From NCBI RefSeq assembly GCF_006345805.1, contig NW_021829256.1:1-6734 (forward strand): 6,734 nt of DNA, in the 5' to 3' direction. Source of the stretch: Octopus sinensis (Eukaryota). Made by a program: the position numbers and the translations under genes. A model generated the notes under the pieces. It saw only the letters and a list, made by a program, of their open reading frames with translations, was not told the origin of the DNA and made no database searches. Of this stretch, positions 121-6,734 are shown one piece after another. Every line of letters begins with the position of its first letter. The first letter of the stretch is position 1.

Positions 121-138
121 CAGGCCTGGCCAACCCAA
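121..138 (+). repeat. Left TIR of hAT element 1
   Basis: CAGGCCTGGCCAACCCAA versus the reverse complement of 2219-2236, CAGGGCTGGCCAACCCAA: 17/18 identical. Confidence 0.95.
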
Positions 139-273
139 ATCGCATCGCGGGCCACTTTGTCCAAATGAATCCTTTCCGCGGGCCGCATATACATGTACAT
201 ACTAAGGATAGATATCAAAACAACACAGATAAGATTTTATTTAGTAAAATAGCATTCAGTCCAATTATACGTA

Positions 274-2075
274 TCAATGAGAAATCTGTTTTTCTTTATC
301 TTCACTAATTTTTTCAAATCAACTTCACAATTACTAGTTGCACATCTTAATTGGTTTTCTAAGTTTTTATCTGTTAAAGAAGATCTATATCTACTTTTAC
401 TAAACTTTAATTTCGAAAAGAATGATTCACATACGTAAGTAGATCCAAAGGAGCTTACAACTCTTTGTGCAAAAATTCTTAAGTTGGGATATTTTTCTGC
501 AGTCACATATTTGTTATAAAGGTCAATTTTGGATATAGTAGGATAAACAAGTCTTAGTTCACTGTTGCACTGTAGGTCAATTATTTCCGTCTGCAAAGTA
601 TTTGAAACAATAGAAACGTCAACATGAAATGGAGAAGAAAATGTTTCAAACATTTTCTCATATTTTTTTAGTTCCGAGAATCGACTGTCAAATGCTGCAG
701 CAAGATTTTTTATTTCATCAGCGTACTTGAAGAAATTTTTACAATGGCTGATTTTAAATTGATTTAGCGTTGGAAAATGTTGATCATTTCCATTTCTTAT
801 TTGACATTCAAACAATGACAATTTCATTCGAAATGCTTTGACTTGATGGCATGCATTAGTAATCAAATTATCCTGTCCTTGTAACTCCTTGTTTAATTGA
901 TTAATTTTTTCGGTTATATCTACCAAAAAGCACAGATCTAGCATCCACTTCATCATTTAATTCAGTTAATGTCATTTTCTTATGCATCATAAAACTTTTG
1001 ATTTCTTCTCTCAAGTCGAAAAAACGTTTTAAACATTTTCCGCGACTCAGCCATCTGACATTGGAAAAATACACAAGATCACCATAGTGAGAATATAACT
1101 CGTTCAATAATTCTTTAAACTGGCGATGTTGAAGTGCATGAGAACGAATGAAGTTTATAGTTCTTACAACCACACTCATAACATGGTTCATAGACAACAC
1201 TTGCGCGCACAAATTGTGTTGATGTATCAAGCAGTGTATTACAAATAAATCATTTTTTATGCTTCTTGACTCCATCTCATCCATTATTAGCTTTACAACT
1301 CCTTTATTTCTTCCAATCATAGCCGGCGCCCCATCTGTTGTCAATCCAGCAAGGGTCTCTAAATTCGCTCCATTGTCGGATAAACATTTCATAACAGCTT
1401 GGAAAATATCTTCGCCCTTTGTAGTATCTTTCAAACTGACAAGGTTAAGCATTTCTTGTTTCACTTGAAAAGATTCGGTAACTCCACGAATATATACTAC
1501 AAGTTGAGACGTGTCTGATATATCCGTGCATTCGTCAAAGGCCAAAGAATAACTTTTGAAATATTTTATTTGATCACGCAAAGTCACCACAATTTCATTT
1601 GAAATGTCATTAACCCTGCGACATATGGTTTGACGTGACAAGCTAATGTTTGAAAACTTTTTAGTTTTATCTGGCAAAATGTCTTTCACGACAGCATCCA
1701 AACACTCTTTTACGAATTCTCCATCCGAAAATGATTTCATTCTCTTTGAAATTATCATTGCAACAGAGTAGCTTGCTTTAACAGTATCAGAAGAAGAGTG
1801 TATCGATGAATTTAATAGTCTTTGCTGATTTCTCAATTCAGATTTAAGCGAATCCAGTTTCCTTGTTTTCAATTCCTTACTAAATTTCGCGTATTCGGAA
1901 TGCTTTGTTTCATAATGTCTTCTTACATTGTACTCTTTCACCACCGATACTTTCTCCTTGCAAATTAAACATGTTGGCTTGGAATTATGCATTATAAAAA
2001 AGTAATCTTCTTCCCAATGATTGCTGAATTGCCTGTTTTCTTCAAAAATTTTCCTTTTCTTTATATTGATAACAG
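274..2075 (-). pseudogene. Buster/SPIN-type hAT transposase (GTF2IRD2-like), ~600 codons, two apparent frameshifts
   Basis: N-terminal KKRKIFEENRQFSNHWEEDYFF, then CLIC...RRHYETKH (BED-like). Catalytic-type motifs LAFDECTD, LTTDGAPAM, HCLIHQ, VRWLSRG, FGSTYVCESFFS. ORFs 901-1992 and 237-956 join by a slip at ~948 (ELNDE-[K]-WMLDL). A second slip at ~303 restores the typical ending KDKEKQISH* (TGA at 274-276). No in-frame ATG upstream of the conserved N-terminus. Confidence 0.92.
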
Positions 2076-2192
2076 CTACAAAATAGATAAACTTTAAAAT
2101 TTATTAAACTTATAAAATTTATCTTTATTTATTAACTTAAGAAAAATTTATCTTGAATGTATTTATAGGTTAACTACATACAAAATTTCTCT

Positions 2193-2214
2193 CGCGGGCC
2201 GCATGCGGCCCGCG
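2193..2214. repeat. Perfect 22-bp subterminal palindrome
   Basis: CGCGGGCCGCATGCGGCCCGCG is its own reverse complement. The half-site CGCGGGCC recurs at 146-153 and 177-184. Confidence 0.9.
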
Positions 2215-2218
2215 GGCC

Positions 2219-2236
2219 TTGGGTTGGCCAGCCCTG
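2219..2236 (-). repeat. Right TIR of hAT element 1
   Basis: TTGGGTTGGCCAGCCCTG, the inverted counterpart of 121-138. Confidence 0.95.
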
Positions 2237-2950
2237 GTTTAGGCCATTGATTTTGGCAAGTACCCGGGAGTATAGTTTGGCAGGCGTGTTCTTCAATGCA
2301 CGGCCGTTGTCATTTAGCGTGTTTAGGGCAGTGCAAGGGTGGTAGAGTTTTCGCGAAGCGAATAGGAATTGTGCTCCTCTCATGTTTAGATGTTCCTCTA
2401 TCGGGAGGAGGTTGGTTTCACAGTGCAGATGGTCGATGGGTGTTGATTTCAGGCACCCAAATATGATGCGCATGGCTTTGTTTTGAATTGATTGGAGAGC
2501 CACAGAGGAGCTCATAGAAAGACAGGGAACCCAACTCGGACTCGCGTAGCTTAGGACAGGGCGAATGTATTGTTTATACACACGTTTGAGAAGTGGTTTC
2601 TGCGCACCAGTGATGCGACCACTTATTGCGTTCAAAATATTTGTACGCCTGTTAGCCTTGTCAGAGATCTTCGAGACATGTTTATTGAAGGACATCGTTA
2701 GGTCGAAGGTTAGTCCGAGAACAGTGGGGTGTTTTGATAGTGGGAGAACAGAGCCAAAGAGAGATAGGTTGGGATGTATGTTTGATTGTCTTCTGTCGGA
2801 AGATAATAGGGTGACCGAGGACTTGGAGGACGAGGCCTCGAGCCTGTTTTCTCTGAGCCAATTCTCAACGGAGTGGAGTTGTTGCTGAAGGTTGAAGGAG
2901 GCAGCTTTGTAGTCTTCGTGTTTTGAGGCAATAATAATGTCGTCAGCGTC
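2237..2950 (-). pseudogene. 5'-truncated jockey/I-like LINE reverse transcriptase fragment (ADD motif through thumb and C-terminal region)
   Basis: One open frame from 2950 to 2237 (238 codons): [D]ADDIIIAS...VENWLRENRL...TVLGLTFDLTMSFNKHV...YKQYIRPVLSYASPSW...LQSIQNKAMRIIFGC...HLHCETNLLPIEEHL. It is cut by the hAT TIR, which supplies the QGWPTQG end of the listed ORF. Clade assignment is approximate. Confidence 0.88.
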
Positions 2951-3380
2951 CCCGACGAGTATGGAATATTGTCATCCCGTCAGGCCTTTTGCCATCTCCC
3001 CGATCGAGTCCGACCGGTTCGAGGAGGCACGAATGGCCCGCTGATTTGAGATTAGCTTTCAAGATTTCATTGAGGCCTTGTGTCTGTGTTCCCTGCCTGC
3101 GCTCCTCTTGCAGGAAAGTGGGTGCAGTCCCTTTTTGTAAACGTCCTCACCGAATCTGCAGCGGTGTTTTGCGCAAACATCCAGACCGAGACGGCATCGT
3201 CTAGTCACGTCCCGATGCTGGAAAGAGTAAGAGCGGAGAGACAGCAAGATTGAATGGAGAGACAGCAAGTCGAGCTGCCTCATCGATTGTCATCGCGAAG
3301 AGGAGTGGCCCTAGCGGATCACCCTATTGCACGCCGGTCTCCGAACGGATGATCTCAGAGTAACATTTTTCCATCCAAAT
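2951..3380 (-). pseudogene. Internally deleted CRE-like non-LTR retrotransposon (RT motif + CCHC knuckle + restriction-like endonuclease)
   Basis: Reads CYSE/IIRSETGVQ*GDPLGPLLFAMTIDEAARLAVSPFNL (RT QQGDPLGP motif), then ALTLSSIGT*LDD, RLGLDVCAKHRCRFGEDVYKKGLHPLSCKRSAGREHRHKA(L)NEILK, and LLEPVGLDRGDGKRPDGMTIF(P)YSSG (RPDG endonuclease motif). Contains stops and 1-nt slips. Confidence 0.85.
3235..3269. repeat. 14-bp direct repeat GGAGAGACAGCAAG
   Basis: Exact copies at 3235-3248 and 3256-3269, at the point where RT-core homology jumps to C-terminal homology. Confidence 0.9.
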
Positions 3381-3391
3381 TCCATCCAAAA
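3370..3391. repeat. 11-bp tandem duplication at the pogo/CRE boundary
   Basis: TCCATCCAAAT (3370-3380) followed by TCCATCCAAAA (3381-3391). Confidence 0.85.
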
Positions 3392-4075
3392 TACGTAAAC
3401 AAAGACCGTCTTTTAAATTCAGCTTCTTGTGTGAATCGACAGGATCAGTTTCATTGGCAATTTTCTCTAACATCGCATCAAATTTAATTTTGTTAAAGTT
3501 CGCTTTAAATGAGCGGATGATTCCCTGATCCATGGGTTGTAAAATTGTGGTCGTTTTTGCAGGAAGGTATAGCAGTTCAATTGATACTAAATTCGAGTAA
3601 ATTTCATGTGAAGGGCATCGATCCACAACAACCAGAATTTTTTTTTGAAGATCACGATCCCATGAAAGAAGCCATTCGTTGGAAATTTTGCTAGTCATCC
3701 ACGACCTTTCAGAATGTCTATAATCAATATATTTTTCCACATTAAAATTCTTAAAGCATCCAGGTTTCTTAAATTTTCCAATCATCAATGGACTTTTTTT
3801 ATCTGTCCCCGTCATATTTGCACACAGCAACAAAGAAAATCTAAAATATAAGAAATACAATAAACCGGTCTTTTAGCATTTTTTGCCCGGGGCGATTTTT
3901 CTGACAAACACTTTTTGAAGGAATCCATTTCTTCCAAAGTCACACACTCATCACTTAAATTATCAAAGACATAAGATATATGTATAACCATGGATTATTG
4001 AATTTATTCCCTTTATTTCTCGATATCTTTTAAAAGGACTTTCGTTAGAAACTGAATGGACAGATATGTTATAAC
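3392..4075 (-). pseudogene. pogo/Tigger-family DDE_1 transposase remnant
   Basis: Degenerate DEC..WKK.IPSKSVCQKNRPGQKMLKD-R-FSLLLCANMTGTDKKSPLMIGKFKKPGCFK, SWMTS, VVDRCPSH, YLPAKTTTILQPMDQGIIRSFKA. The portion 3870-4075 is degraded and less certain. Confidence 0.88.
3841..3865 (-). other. Putative 25-nt spliceosomal intron in the pogo transposase
   Basis: CG|GTTTATTGTATTTCTTATATTTTAG|A. Removal gives KDRFSLLLCAN, matching the pogo KxRxTvllc.N motif. Retention shifts the frame and reads TAG. Confidence 0.72.
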
Positions 4076-4092
4076 TAGGGCCAACATTTTTG

Positions 4093-4190
4093 TAACCTTA
4101 AAAATTGAAAAATTTAACCTTAAAAAGTTAACTTTATTAACCTATAAACCAAAATTTTTAACCTTAAAATTAAAAAAATTTAACTTTATT
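4093..4190 (+). repeat. Subterminal TAAC(C/T)T(T/A) repeat array of hAT element 2
   Basis: Motif starts at 4093, 4115, 4138, 4159 and 4180, with an extra copy at 4129. Confidence 0.7.
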
Positions 4191-4245
4191 TATTCTCAGG
4201 TAAAACCTGTAAAGTATAAATAAGAACAATAAAATACTTTAAAGA

Positions 4246-4424
4246 CTATTTATTGAAAATGGACATAACATAATTTTCCAAATTTTGTGTAGAAAAGTTT
4301 CTGTTTGACCTCATAAAACTCCTAAATTGCGAAAAGCATCGTTCGATAGGTGCGAGGATGGTTGACAGTTTTGAAGTAACGAATAATCTTCCGGAGAGAT
4401 ATTTTTATTATCCATATTAATAAT
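4246..4424 (-). pseudogene. C-terminal part of hAT element 2 transposase
   Basis: (KI)INMDNKNISPEDYSLLQNCQPSS, then a slip at ~4353, then APIERCFSQFRSFMRSNRNFSTQNLENYVMSIFNK* (TAG at 4246-4248). This is the hAT C-terminal S.ER.FS motif. Confidence 0.85.
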
Positions 4425-4478
4425 TGTCGCGCGCAATGGATGAAACGCGTGCCTAAAGTGAAACGCTGTGAACCTTGA
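4425..4478 (+). repeat. Left TIR of Ginger-like element
   Basis: TGTCGCGCGCAATGGATGAAACGCGTGCCTAAAGTGAAACGCTGTGAACCTTGA. Core 4440-4466 is the exact reverse complement of 5983-6009. TGAAACGC occurs twice within it. Confidence 0.95.
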
Positions 4479-5430
4479 GAAAACCACAAAAAACCTCGAA
4501 AATAAAATTAACAATCCTTTGATGAAAACAGGAATAAAACCGAGAAATCATTTTTTATTATTATCGTTTGAAAGATTAACAATTTATTTAAATAATGGTT
4601 AGCCATTTTAAAATTACCAAAAAATTAAAAATATTTTAACCTGAAAATTTACCTGTCTAAATTTTTTTAACTTATGATTTAAATACTATTTTTTCATTTC
4701 CATCTTGATCTTTTATTTTAACTCTATTATTTGAAATTAAATCTTCAACAGTAAAGATTTGTTGATGATAAAAAGATTCTAATTTTCGCTTCTTCGTCCT
4801 TTGATTTGTATCAAAATCTTTTTTCAGCAAAACATTATTTCCATTGCAATTTCTTTCAATGTTTTTGAAAAATTTCGTTCCATTCTTTCAAGATATTTGT
4901 CATTTATGATAGTTTGATTTTCATGTTCTTCAATTAATTCATCATCATTATAATAAGAAATGTTATATCCTCTTGTTCGGAAAAAATCCATAAATGGTGA
5001 CATATTTATAGAAGAATGAATTGAAATATTGTACTGATATACAATTTTTTCTAACACATCCACCCATTTTTTCTGTTTGTCTGTGAGTTCTTTTTGAATC
5101 CATCTGCAAATGGTTTGATTGCAACGCTCCACTTGTCCCTGTGATTCTGGATGTCTTGGACGTCCCCTTTTATGAATTATTTTAAATTCTTCACATAATG
5201 ACGTTATTTCTGAATTAACAAATTCTGTTCCGTTGTCAGACTGCAGAATTTTTGGTGGACCATAGGAAAGAAATATAGTTTTCAATGATTCCGAAACTGT
5301 AACTGCTTCTTTATTTTCTATTTTTTTAGCAAAGCAAAATTTTGAATAAATATCTATGACATTCATAAGATATTTATAGGAATCATTTATATCTGCATAA
5401 AACGAAAGATCGACTAAATCAACTTGATAG

Positions 5431-5454
5431 CTAAAAATAAGCTATTGAATGAAC
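5431..5454 (-). other. Putative 24-nt intron in the Ginger integrase
   Basis: CG|GTTCATTCAATAGCTTATTTTTAG|C. Removal gives PRERYQVDLVDL. Retention leaves an in-frame TAG just before the first catalytic Asp. Confidence 0.78.
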
Positions 5455-5724
5455 CGTTCTCGAGGTTCTTTGGCTACTATGTTGACTAGTGGATATTTTC
5501 TCTTTAAGGGCTGACTTCGCTGACATTTGTGGCATGATGATATTACATCCCTAATTATGTTTCGATTGATTATGCAAAATTATTTTTGCAATACTCTTCC
5601 ATTTTATTAAATCCATAGTGATAAATTGAATGAATCCTTTCACAATGCAGTTTCATGGATTCGAAATCATTTGAGGCAATTACCAATATTTTGTTTCCAT
5701 CAGATTGTTTATAATATAGCACAC

Positions 5725-5746
5725 CTATCATTAGATTTAATAGTAC
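5725..5746 (-). other. Putative 22-nt intron in the Ginger integrase
   Basis: AG|GTACTATTAAATCTAATGATAG|GT. Removal joins NFVNSG to GVLYYKQSDG. A branch-like CTAAT lies next to the acceptor. Confidence 0.72.
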
Positions 5747-5971
5747 CTCCAGAATTTACGAAATTTCTACATTTTTTGAGAAAACGAAATCTTTTTAGTC
5801 TTTAAAAATCTTCTGGTATTGTATTATTTATTAAAAAATCAAGAATATTCTTATACTCCTGATCATCCTTTACAATGTTGGCAAATCTCATTTCGATAAT
5901 ATTATCTCAAAGTGCGCAATCATCTTTAATATTGACTTGATAATTGTCAAGAGCTTAATTGAAGGTTAAAT

Positions 5972-6024
5972 TCAAGGTCACGGCGTTTCACTTTAGGCAC
6001 GCGTTTCATTTATGGCGCGTGACA
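5972..6024 (-). repeat. Right TIR of Ginger-like element
   Basis: Reverse complement reads TGTCACGCGCCATAAATGAAACGCGTGCCTAAAGTGAAACGCCGTGACCTTGA. Confidence 0.95.
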
Positions 6025-6169
6025 ATAATTTTAGTCATATCGCTCTCTAAAATTCTCTTCTCTAAATATTTTTTGATCCCTGCTTCATCCTACCCGAAGT
6101 CAAGTGTACTTAACGTTGAATATGCAAATTCTATTGTACATTTGTTACTATCAAGTTGTAATATTTTCT

Positions 6170-6197
6170 CTATGAGATTAATTACTATATGAAAAAC
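6170..6197 (-). other. Putative 28-nt intron in hAT element 2 transposase
   Basis: AG|GTTTTTCATATAGTAATTAATCTCATAG|AG. Removal gives YSHIPEKILQLDS in frame. Retention gives TAA and a frameshift. Confidence 0.72.
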
Positions 6198-6582
6198 CTG
6201 GAATATGTGAATAGTTATGCGAAATTGCACATAAGCGTTTTACTAGCTTTTCATTTTCAATGCATTTTTGGTGGCAGTCACTAGTATTCCTTTGTCCTCA
6301 ATCAAATCAAAAATGTTAATCACTGAGATTAAATTTCTTGAATAAAAAGATGCAGCCTTTAACCAGGTGCCCCATCTCGTCAACACAACTTTCGGAGGAA
6401 TTCCAATTTCGTAAAACAACAATTTTCGCTTGTGGTTCTTCCTGACAGAAGCTTGCACGCTAGCTATCACATCATCAACTTCTGATAAGATTTTCTGACC
6501 TCCATTGAACAATTATGCAAAATATGGGTGACGCAATTAACATGAAAAAGATTGGGCTATAAATTTTTTAAAATTTTCCCGG

Positions 6583-6610
6583 CTAAATCATCAATTAATT
6601 AAAACAATAC
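6583..6610 (-). other. Putative 28-nt intron in hAT element 2 transposase
   Basis: CG|GTATTGTTTTAATTAATTGATGATTTAG|CC. Removal gives DAARYMTSAGKILK. Retention gives TGA TGA and a frameshift. Confidence 0.78.
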
Positions 6611-6734
6611 CGGATGTCATATACCGTGCAGCATCGGAAATGAGAAGCATAAAATTATCCCGTTCAACCATAAGGTTTCGAATGGAATCATCAACGATCT
6701 GTGCTATGATATTTTTTGTTGGCGCGGATTCGAT

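Follow-up and report, generated by a model that had tools for sequence, protein, structure and literature searches.

Three unrelated DNA transposons on contig NW_021829256.1 of the Octopus sinensis assembly GCF_006345805.1 very probably carry real introns of only 22–28 nucleotides (nt) in their transposase genes. The window analyzed here is that complete contig (6734 bases; G000:C5727), read along the forward strand; it consists of nested transposons only, and every gene lies on the minus strand. The reading we favor, with a probability of about 0.82, is that five segments in a pogo, a Ginger, and a hAT element (hAT2) are ordinary U2-type GT-AG introns of resident transposons, and that their size is normal for the organism that carries them, likely a dicyemid. 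We interpret the segments as introns because their removal restores the reading frame, because their site is conserved and their length is not, because the flanking exons evolve as coding sequence does, and because homologs are colinear with the spliced products.

An initial inspection of the letters alone (hereafter, the original prediction) had marked five AT-rich GT..TAG segments in this contig, and all five are present exactly where it placed them, on the minus strand. The pogo intron occupies positions 3841–3865 (minus strand, 25 nt, GT..TAG, phase 2; GTTTATTGTATTTCTTATATTTTAG), and its removal joins ...KMLKDR to FSLLLCANMTG.... In the Ginger gene, intron 1 (5725–5746, minus strand, 22 nt, phase 1; GTACTATTAAATCTAATGATAG) separates ...NFVNSG from GVLYYK..., while intron 2 (5431–5454, minus strand, 24 nt, phase 2; GTTCATTCAATAGCTTATTTTTAG) separates ...AKEPRER from YQVDLVDLS... 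and contains an in-frame TAG. The hAT2 gene is interrupted at a first site (6583–6610, minus strand, 28 nt, phase 1; GTATTGTTTTAATTAATTGATGATTTAG), where ...SDAARYMTS is joined to AGKILKNLYPNLFHVNC..., and at a second (6170–6197, minus strand, 28 nt, phase 1; GTTTTTCATATAGTAATTAATCTCATAG), where ...SHNYSHIP is joined to EKILQLESNEC.... Every segment starts with GT and ends with TAG, with a G+C content of 16–25%. The gene names given at the outset also hold, the pogo gene matching the Pfam domain DDE_1, the Ginger-like gene rve, and the hAT-like gene DUF659. In the mechanism we propose, the transposase pre-mRNA would be spliced by the host’s ultra-short-intron spliceosome, and an intact enzyme would be encoded by the spliced mRNA alone, since four introns have lengths that shift the frame and the fifth, the 24-nt Ginger intron, holds the in-frame TAG.

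The assembly contains at least 15 near-full-length Ginger copies at 97–99% identity, and in an alignment of 16 copies both segments lie at one site in all copies that cover them. The majority consensus of these 16 is broken when read unspliced, but removal of exactly the 22- and 24-nt segments opens a 396-residue open reading frame (ORF) running from ATG to stop. This 1.2-kb consensus holds 52 possible GT..AG segments of 15–40 nt, among which only two pairs open the frame. One is the pair originally predicted; the other has intron 1 in common and combines it with an overlapping 36-nt segment whose excision deletes residues that align with homologs. A frame-opening pair was found in none of 100 shuffled Ginger sequences, and the pattern is well beyond chance. 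The spliced protein is colinear with Ginger homologs from other organisms (26–43% identity, most of them about as long), and at neither junction do these have an insertion (alignment A1). In the spliced product, the Pfam rve match (E = 7e-17) continues unbroken across the junction left by intron 2. A match to Integrase_H2C2 scores 22.7 bits (E = 1e-4), below the 25.5-bit cut-off, and its H..H and C..C residues are invariant in the homolog alignment. Among the named matches to the Ginger protein are KRBA2-like and SCAND3-like proteins.

On C10278, a Ginger subfamily that has diverged from these copies has introns at the same two sites and in the same phases, here 22 and 23 nt long, with about a third to half of their bases different. 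The counterpart of intron 1 is again a 22-nt GT..AG segment, in which 10 of the 22 bases differ. The change from 24 to 23 nt in intron 2 would frameshift a translated segment. Outside the introns, divergence between the subfamilies at codon positions 1/2/3 of the spliced frame is 27/23/52% in exon 2 and 22/14/52% in exon 3.

The hAT2 gene gives a similar picture from a consensus of three independent lineages and two copies of an 81% family. This consensus is broken when unspliced and yields a single 307-residue ORF extending to the stop once both 28-nt segments are removed. Copies in the assembly fall at 95–100% and at about 75–85% identity. The 81% family retains a 28-nt GT/AG segment with four substitutions at the 6583–6610 site; at the 6170–6197 site its intron is 25 nt long, and the indels all fall inside it. 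Substitutions peak at the same codon position in the exons on either side of the intron. In the spliced product, a DUF659 match (E = 5e-9) spans the 6583–6610 junction; a C-terminal hAT-type motif is visible by eye, and the Pfam domain Dimer_Tnp_hAT was not detected at E < 0.01. Upstream of the part of the gene present in the window, one copy (L071, G000:C1794:292000-296500) shows by eye what may be a further, third hAT2 intron (25 nt; GTAAGGATTTTTCGATAATATATAG), which would join a zinc-finger exon, ...HRISKKHKTFV, to ...LTTFSQQKLDES....

At the pogo site, copies of a 95% family carry an identical 25-nt segment. A young family at 76%, its copies agreeing with one another at about 99%, has a 24-nt segment there that retains GT and AG. 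With the intron taken out, substitutions in the two flanking exons peak at one and the same codon position. Homology of the window element to the family copies ends at 3380 and at about 3925. The window fragment matches DDE_1 only (E = 6e-30); the full-length 76% family matches DDE_1 at E = 6e-38 over profile positions 1–177 and HTH_Tnp_Tc5 at E = 1e-8, and in the spliced pogo product the DDE_1 match continues across the junction. In this family, a complete 505-residue ORF reads through the 24 nt as FNFYLFFR. These residues are missing at exactly that point in all 12 aligned pogo homologs, which are otherwise colinear and have no insertion there (alignment A2). In the 76% family (L054 and some 20 sister loci), a full-length protein would result from spliced and from unspliced mRNA alike, the two forms differing by these eight residues directly ahead of the conserved LLLC(A/S)N strand. 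We also considered NLSDECVTL, upstream of the pogo intron, as a frameshifted NADETG motif and ruled this out, the homology of the window element ending near 3925.

Compared across all three families, position and phase are conserved, while 14–45% of intron bases differ between subfamilies. Intron lengths in the window family and its diverged counterpart are 22/22 and 24/23 nt for Ginger, 25/24 nt for pogo, and 28/28 and 28/25 nt for hAT2, and GT and AG are kept in the counterparts of all five. Length changes inside the segments amount to 1–3 nt; exon indels that distinguish subfamilies are multiples of three or occur in a single copy. The segments are not private to the window, since every aligned sister copy that covers them has them at the same site, and the spliced Ginger and pogo proteins align colinearly with homologs that lack them; both of these checks had been suggested together with the original prediction. 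Two sister copies have a point change inside a segment, and the splice sites themselves are altered among aligned copies only in pogo L048 (AG to GG), the degenerate pogo L050, and hAT2 L072 (final AG to AA). Apart from base composition, the five introns have no sequence in common, and none of them has inverted ends, repeats, or target duplications of its own. A putative branch-point motif, YTNAY, starting 10–12 nt before the 3′ end is found in nine of 10 transposon introns, those of the window and their subfamily counterparts (a count reached in one of 2000 shuffles) versus four of 16 introns of actin genes from the same assembly, the search window having been set after the data were seen. 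The transposon introns are also more AT-rich than the actin introns (22% versus 31% G+C).

That removal restores the frame, as originally claimed, is true of the Ginger and hAT2 family consensuses; the window copies themselves remain dead after splicing through private lesions. The window Ginger copy has TAA for CAA and two 1-nt deletions in its coding region, none of which occurs in other aligned copies, and the window hAT2 copy has TAG for TAT, TAG for AAG, and one 1-nt deletion. Across the Ginger, pogo, and hAT2 copies examined (L001–L074), copy-specific frameshifts are mostly 1-nt indels in runs of A or T. Such indels may be errors of long-read assembly in a co-assembled organism of low coverage, and the number of intact copies is therefore probably underestimated. 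The warning that annotation based on ORFs alone would miscall the segments as lesions is borne out.

The Ginger family has been mobile recently. The window copy is a complete 1.6-kb Ginger2-like element (4425–6024, minus strand; coding from 5891 to 4657) inserted in the hAT2 gene. Its inverted-repeat arms measure 53 nt; some 47 nt of this belong to the element itself as terminal inverted repeats (TIRs) starting TGTCR, the two ends being TGTCG and TGTCA, and the element is flanked by target-site duplications ATAAT at 4420–4424 and 6025–6029. It conforms to the description of the Ginger2/TDD group, namely TGTNR termini, TIRs of about 50–180 bp, and an AT-rich target duplication of 4–5 bp (PMC2836005). 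Eight Ginger copies, including that in the window, have perfect 5-bp duplications (ATTAT, GTAAT, ATAAT, CTAAG, TTAAA, TATAT, ATCAT, and ACTAA). Three near-identical loci with the same arrangement of pogo and hAT2 (L041, L043, and L044, on C12600, C12604, and C1153) lack Ginger and present an empty site with a single ATAAT, and in loci without Ginger the two hAT2 parts, 4088–4419 and 6030–6734, are continuous. The presence or absence of Ginger at this site points to recent transposition or to haplotypes of a parasite population. A complete spliced ORF is found in one copy, L006 on C12461; the window copy is not among the intact ones, and no copy carries the exact exon-3 ORF of the consensus. 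The recent mobility follows from the 97–99% identity of the copies, the complete spliced ORF, and the absence of the window insertion from three near-identical loci. Such movement entails that a working transposase was made and, given the structure of the consensus, that both introns were presumably removed.

The assembly as a whole comprises 2.72 Gb in 13,516 contigs and is a composite of Octopus sinensis and unplaced contigs of a second, fast-evolving animal. The actins on its chromosome-scale contigs have just one intron, a few kilobases long, as judged by exon coordinates. Three unplaced contigs (C12602, C8911, and C8460) carry divergent actins with three to five GT-AG introns each, sixteen in total, of 24–34 nt; these tiny-intron actins belong to the animal type and are written in the standard code, TAA and TAG being absent from their frames. 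Of roughly 200 hits to the three transposon families, in a genome search that scores best candidates only, not one falls on a chromosome-scale contig. A transposon and a tiny-intron gene of the actin family occur together on C8460 and C8901 (Ginger) and on C12600 (the pogo and hAT2 locus). For this second animal the most likely identity is a dicyemid renal parasite (Dicyema), assembled together with the octopus that it inhabits. Among 51 metazoan genomes, introns this short are reported only for Myxobolidae and Dicyema japonicum (PMC13644364). Dicyema acuticephalum has introns of 26.2 ± 1.9 nt and unusually divergent actins (PMC2222250), and the genome of D. japonicum collected from O. sinensis has 36.7% G+C and 49% repeats (PMC6736024). 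The narrow size class of 22–28 nt is thus a genome-wide property of the source organism.

Contigs of the second animal reach 1.29 Mb (C12602, C8911, C8460, C12600, C1794, and C8702). Public proteins named as Octopus sinensis (P0015, P0091, P0103, and P0109) match these transposons; P0015 and P0091 are placed on C1794 and C8702, and P0091 combines a kinase with a pogo-derived domain. A limited literature check found no earlier report of contamination of octopus sequence by dicyemids. Among named sequences, the Ginger and the pogo transposase both have their best relatives, at 32–42% identity, in the microsporidia Nosema granulosis and Dictyocoela muelleri (P0003, P0010, P0016, P0017, P0069, and P0071), both of which infect amphipods. 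These relationships could reflect horizontal transfer among parasites or the sampling of databases.

Several observations weigh against the interpretation we favor. Splicing itself is inferred from genomic DNA. The 24-nt pogo intron of the 76% family is in frame and free of stops, so coding capacity does not force splicing there. Only one of the 15 Ginger copies with a locatable start has a complete spliced ORF, and colinearity of hAT2 rests on Pfam DUF659 and on motifs recognized by eye. Absence of the transposons from octopus chromosomes comes from a genome search that scored best candidates only and is not exhaustive. The dicyemid assignment is circumstantial, the best match of one tiny-intron actin having about 88% identity and no named Dicyema protein appearing among 8000 matches. 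Were the segments chance GT..AG insertions that disable dead copies, the private stops, 1-nt indels, and truncations of the window copies would fit well, and GT..AG pairs are common in AT-rich sequence, as the 52 candidates in 1.2 kb illustrate. We nonetheless hold this account to be highly improbable, given that the consensus ORFs are intact only after precise removal, that third-position bias persists in the spliced frame on both sides of the segments after subfamilies diverged, that 1–3-nt length changes are tolerated inside the segments and not in the exons except as multiples of three or single-copy events, and that the recent transposition of Ginger needs a working transposase. DNA segments of the kind eliminated by ciliates were ruled out by boundaries of GT and AG in place of TA, by the standard code, and by the animal-type actins. 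Genuine introns of host-typical size could also belong to a host other than a dicyemid, for instance a myxozoan or, among ciliates, the likes of Chromidina, a renal parasite. Myxobolid introns are equally short (PMC13644364), the actin marker gave no tie of these contigs to Dicyema, and the best named Ginger and pogo relatives being microsporidian shows parasite-associated sequence. Animal-type actins and the standard code argue against ciliates and microsporidia. Myxobolids, to our knowledge, infect fish and annelids and not cephalopods, which counts against a myxozoan. Dicyemids are characteristic of the kidneys of O. sinensis, and G+C content, repeat load, intron size, and divergent actins all match them (PMC6736024, PMC2222250), leaving another host quite unlikely.

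The original prediction went further, proposing that the introns were gained in this host by an active process. On such a reading, new 22–28-nt introns would still be inserted and the three superfamilies would have acquired theirs recently and independently. That three unrelated superfamilies carry introns is in keeping with such a process, as is the lack of insertions in sampled Ginger and pogo homologs, by which the introns are either derived in this lineage or lost everywhere else. We consider an ongoing process unlikely, however, and this part of the prediction is not supported. Each intron is common to subfamilies whose exons differ by about 15–30%, and hence older than the subfamily splits; among the copies examined there is no variation in intron presence and none that precisely lacks an intron. 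Nor is there a signature of tandem duplication, local alignment of the introns to their 35-nt flanks being no better than that of shuffled introns (p = 0.14 to 1.0), and the five introns are mutually unrelated in sequence. The other hAT of the window (121–2236) has no frame-breaking intron. The shared narrow size, which had been taken as a sign of gain, is the host norm (actin introns of 24–34 nt; 26.2 ± 1.9 nt in D. acuticephalum, PMC2222250) and is uninformative about when or how the introns arose. What survives is that intron gain at some time in this lineage is plausible, since the sampled Ginger and pogo homologs are without insertions, loss elsewhere being also possible. That all of these transposon introns are true gains within the dicyemid lineage is a tentative proposition, to which we give somewhat less than even odds.

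The remainder of the window is made up of further nested elements. A complete hAT element (121–2236, minus strand) is bounded by 18-nt TIRs (CAGGCCTGGCCAACCCAA), with G+C-rich palindromes (CGCGGGCCGCATGCGGCCCGCG) directly inside each end. Its coding region is near intact, with zf-C2H2_12, DUF4371, and hAT dimerization domains and a single frameshift near 901–956, and neither its ORFs nor its domain matches give evidence of a tiny or frame-breaking intron. A look-up found no record in public assemblies of the 363-residue hAT ORF of the window. A fragment of a reverse transcriptase of the type lacking long terminal repeats (about 2240–3323, minus strand) follows; it has 47–51% G+C, compared with 27–35% around it, and several frameshifts. 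Many copies of long interspersed nuclear elements (LINEs) have been reported in D. japonicum (PMC6736024). The pogo/Tigger transposase fragment with its DDE_1 domain (3380–3925, minus strand) is truncated at both ends. Beyond it, the downstream part of hAT2 (4088–4419, minus strand) holds the end of the coding region, with its stop at 4246–4248, and the Ginger insertion separates this from the upstream part of the hAT2 transposase gene (6030–6734, minus strand), which runs off the end of the contig. Direct repeats of the TTAACCTTAAAA type lie in the 3′ subterminal region of hAT2 at 4089–4188, spaced 22 and 44 nt apart, and are conserved in the 97% and 81% families; they are probably subterminal transposase-binding repeats.

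Tools based on ORFs would score such transposases as dead unless introns of about 20–30 nt are allowed, and in this case a Ginger family with recent mobility would be overlooked. The data also imply that the public Octopus sinensis reference contains a large, transposon-rich genome, probably that of a dicyemid, with genes annotated as octopus proteins. Cephalopod research on transposons, gene families, and horizontal transfer may be misled by contigs of a second animal, some of them with genes that bear octopus names. A more modest lead concerns the introns themselves. As their sites are not shared by the sampled homologs, they are candidate lineage-specific gains, datable by the divergence of the subfamilies, in a lineage noted for the conservation of its intron positions. 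If all were indeed gains in the dicyemid lineage, this would be notable, because the introns of dicyemid host genes are reported at ancient, conserved positions, and transposon families of known relative age would then serve as clocks for de novo introns of about 25 nt in an animal.

Introns of comparable size are known from other systems. Those of Paramecium measure 20–35 nt, and when retained they mostly shift the frame or introduce a stop, exposing the transcript to translational surveillance. The introns described here resemble them in that four of the five are not multiples of three and the fifth holds an in-frame TAG. They differ in occurring alongside the standard code and animal-type actins; five introns are also too few to establish a rule, and the 24-nt pogo variant breaks it. 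Myxobolids such as Henneguya, Thelohanellus, and Myxobolus have median intron lengths of 22–27 nt, with GTa...AG boundaries and, upstream of the AG, weak conservation of A residues (PMC13644364). They are cnidarian parasites of fish and annelids, and a cnidarian origin is not indicated here. Introners are transposons that become introns, whereas the present case is the reverse, transposons that contain them; the traits of Introners, near-identical intron copies with terminal repeats of their own, are not seen in the five introns, nor is there significant similarity to the flanks.

Transposase genes with introns are themselves well known, among them those of the P element, Ac, and Drosophila pogo. 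Ginger1 transposase genes contain one to four GT-AG introns (PMC2836005), and Ginger1 parallels the present elements in having an interrupted transposase gene and an enzyme dependent on host splicing. The original prediction was thus right to suggest that transposase expression would depend on the host spliceosome, which is equally true of every intron-bearing transposon. The introns described here are several times shorter than those of described intron-bearing transposons, and the present Ginger is of the Ginger2/TDD type, introns having been mentioned for Ginger1 only (PMC2836005). The closest likeness is to the introns of dicyemids (D. acuticephalum and D. japonicum), which are GT-AG introns of about 22–30 nt with a narrow size range and weak signals beyond GT and AG, in a repeat-rich parasite of O. 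sinensis (PMC2222250, PMC6736024, PMC13644364). The actin introns of the unplaced contigs agree with this class. Published dicyemid introns lie in host genes at conserved positions; those described here interrupt transposase genes where no sampled homolog has an intron, and their dicyemid origin is putative. The finding is largely ordinary and reveals neither a new kind of intron nor a new mechanism of gain: it is the expected combination of two known things, ultra-short introns like those of dicyemids and transposases whose genes bear introns.

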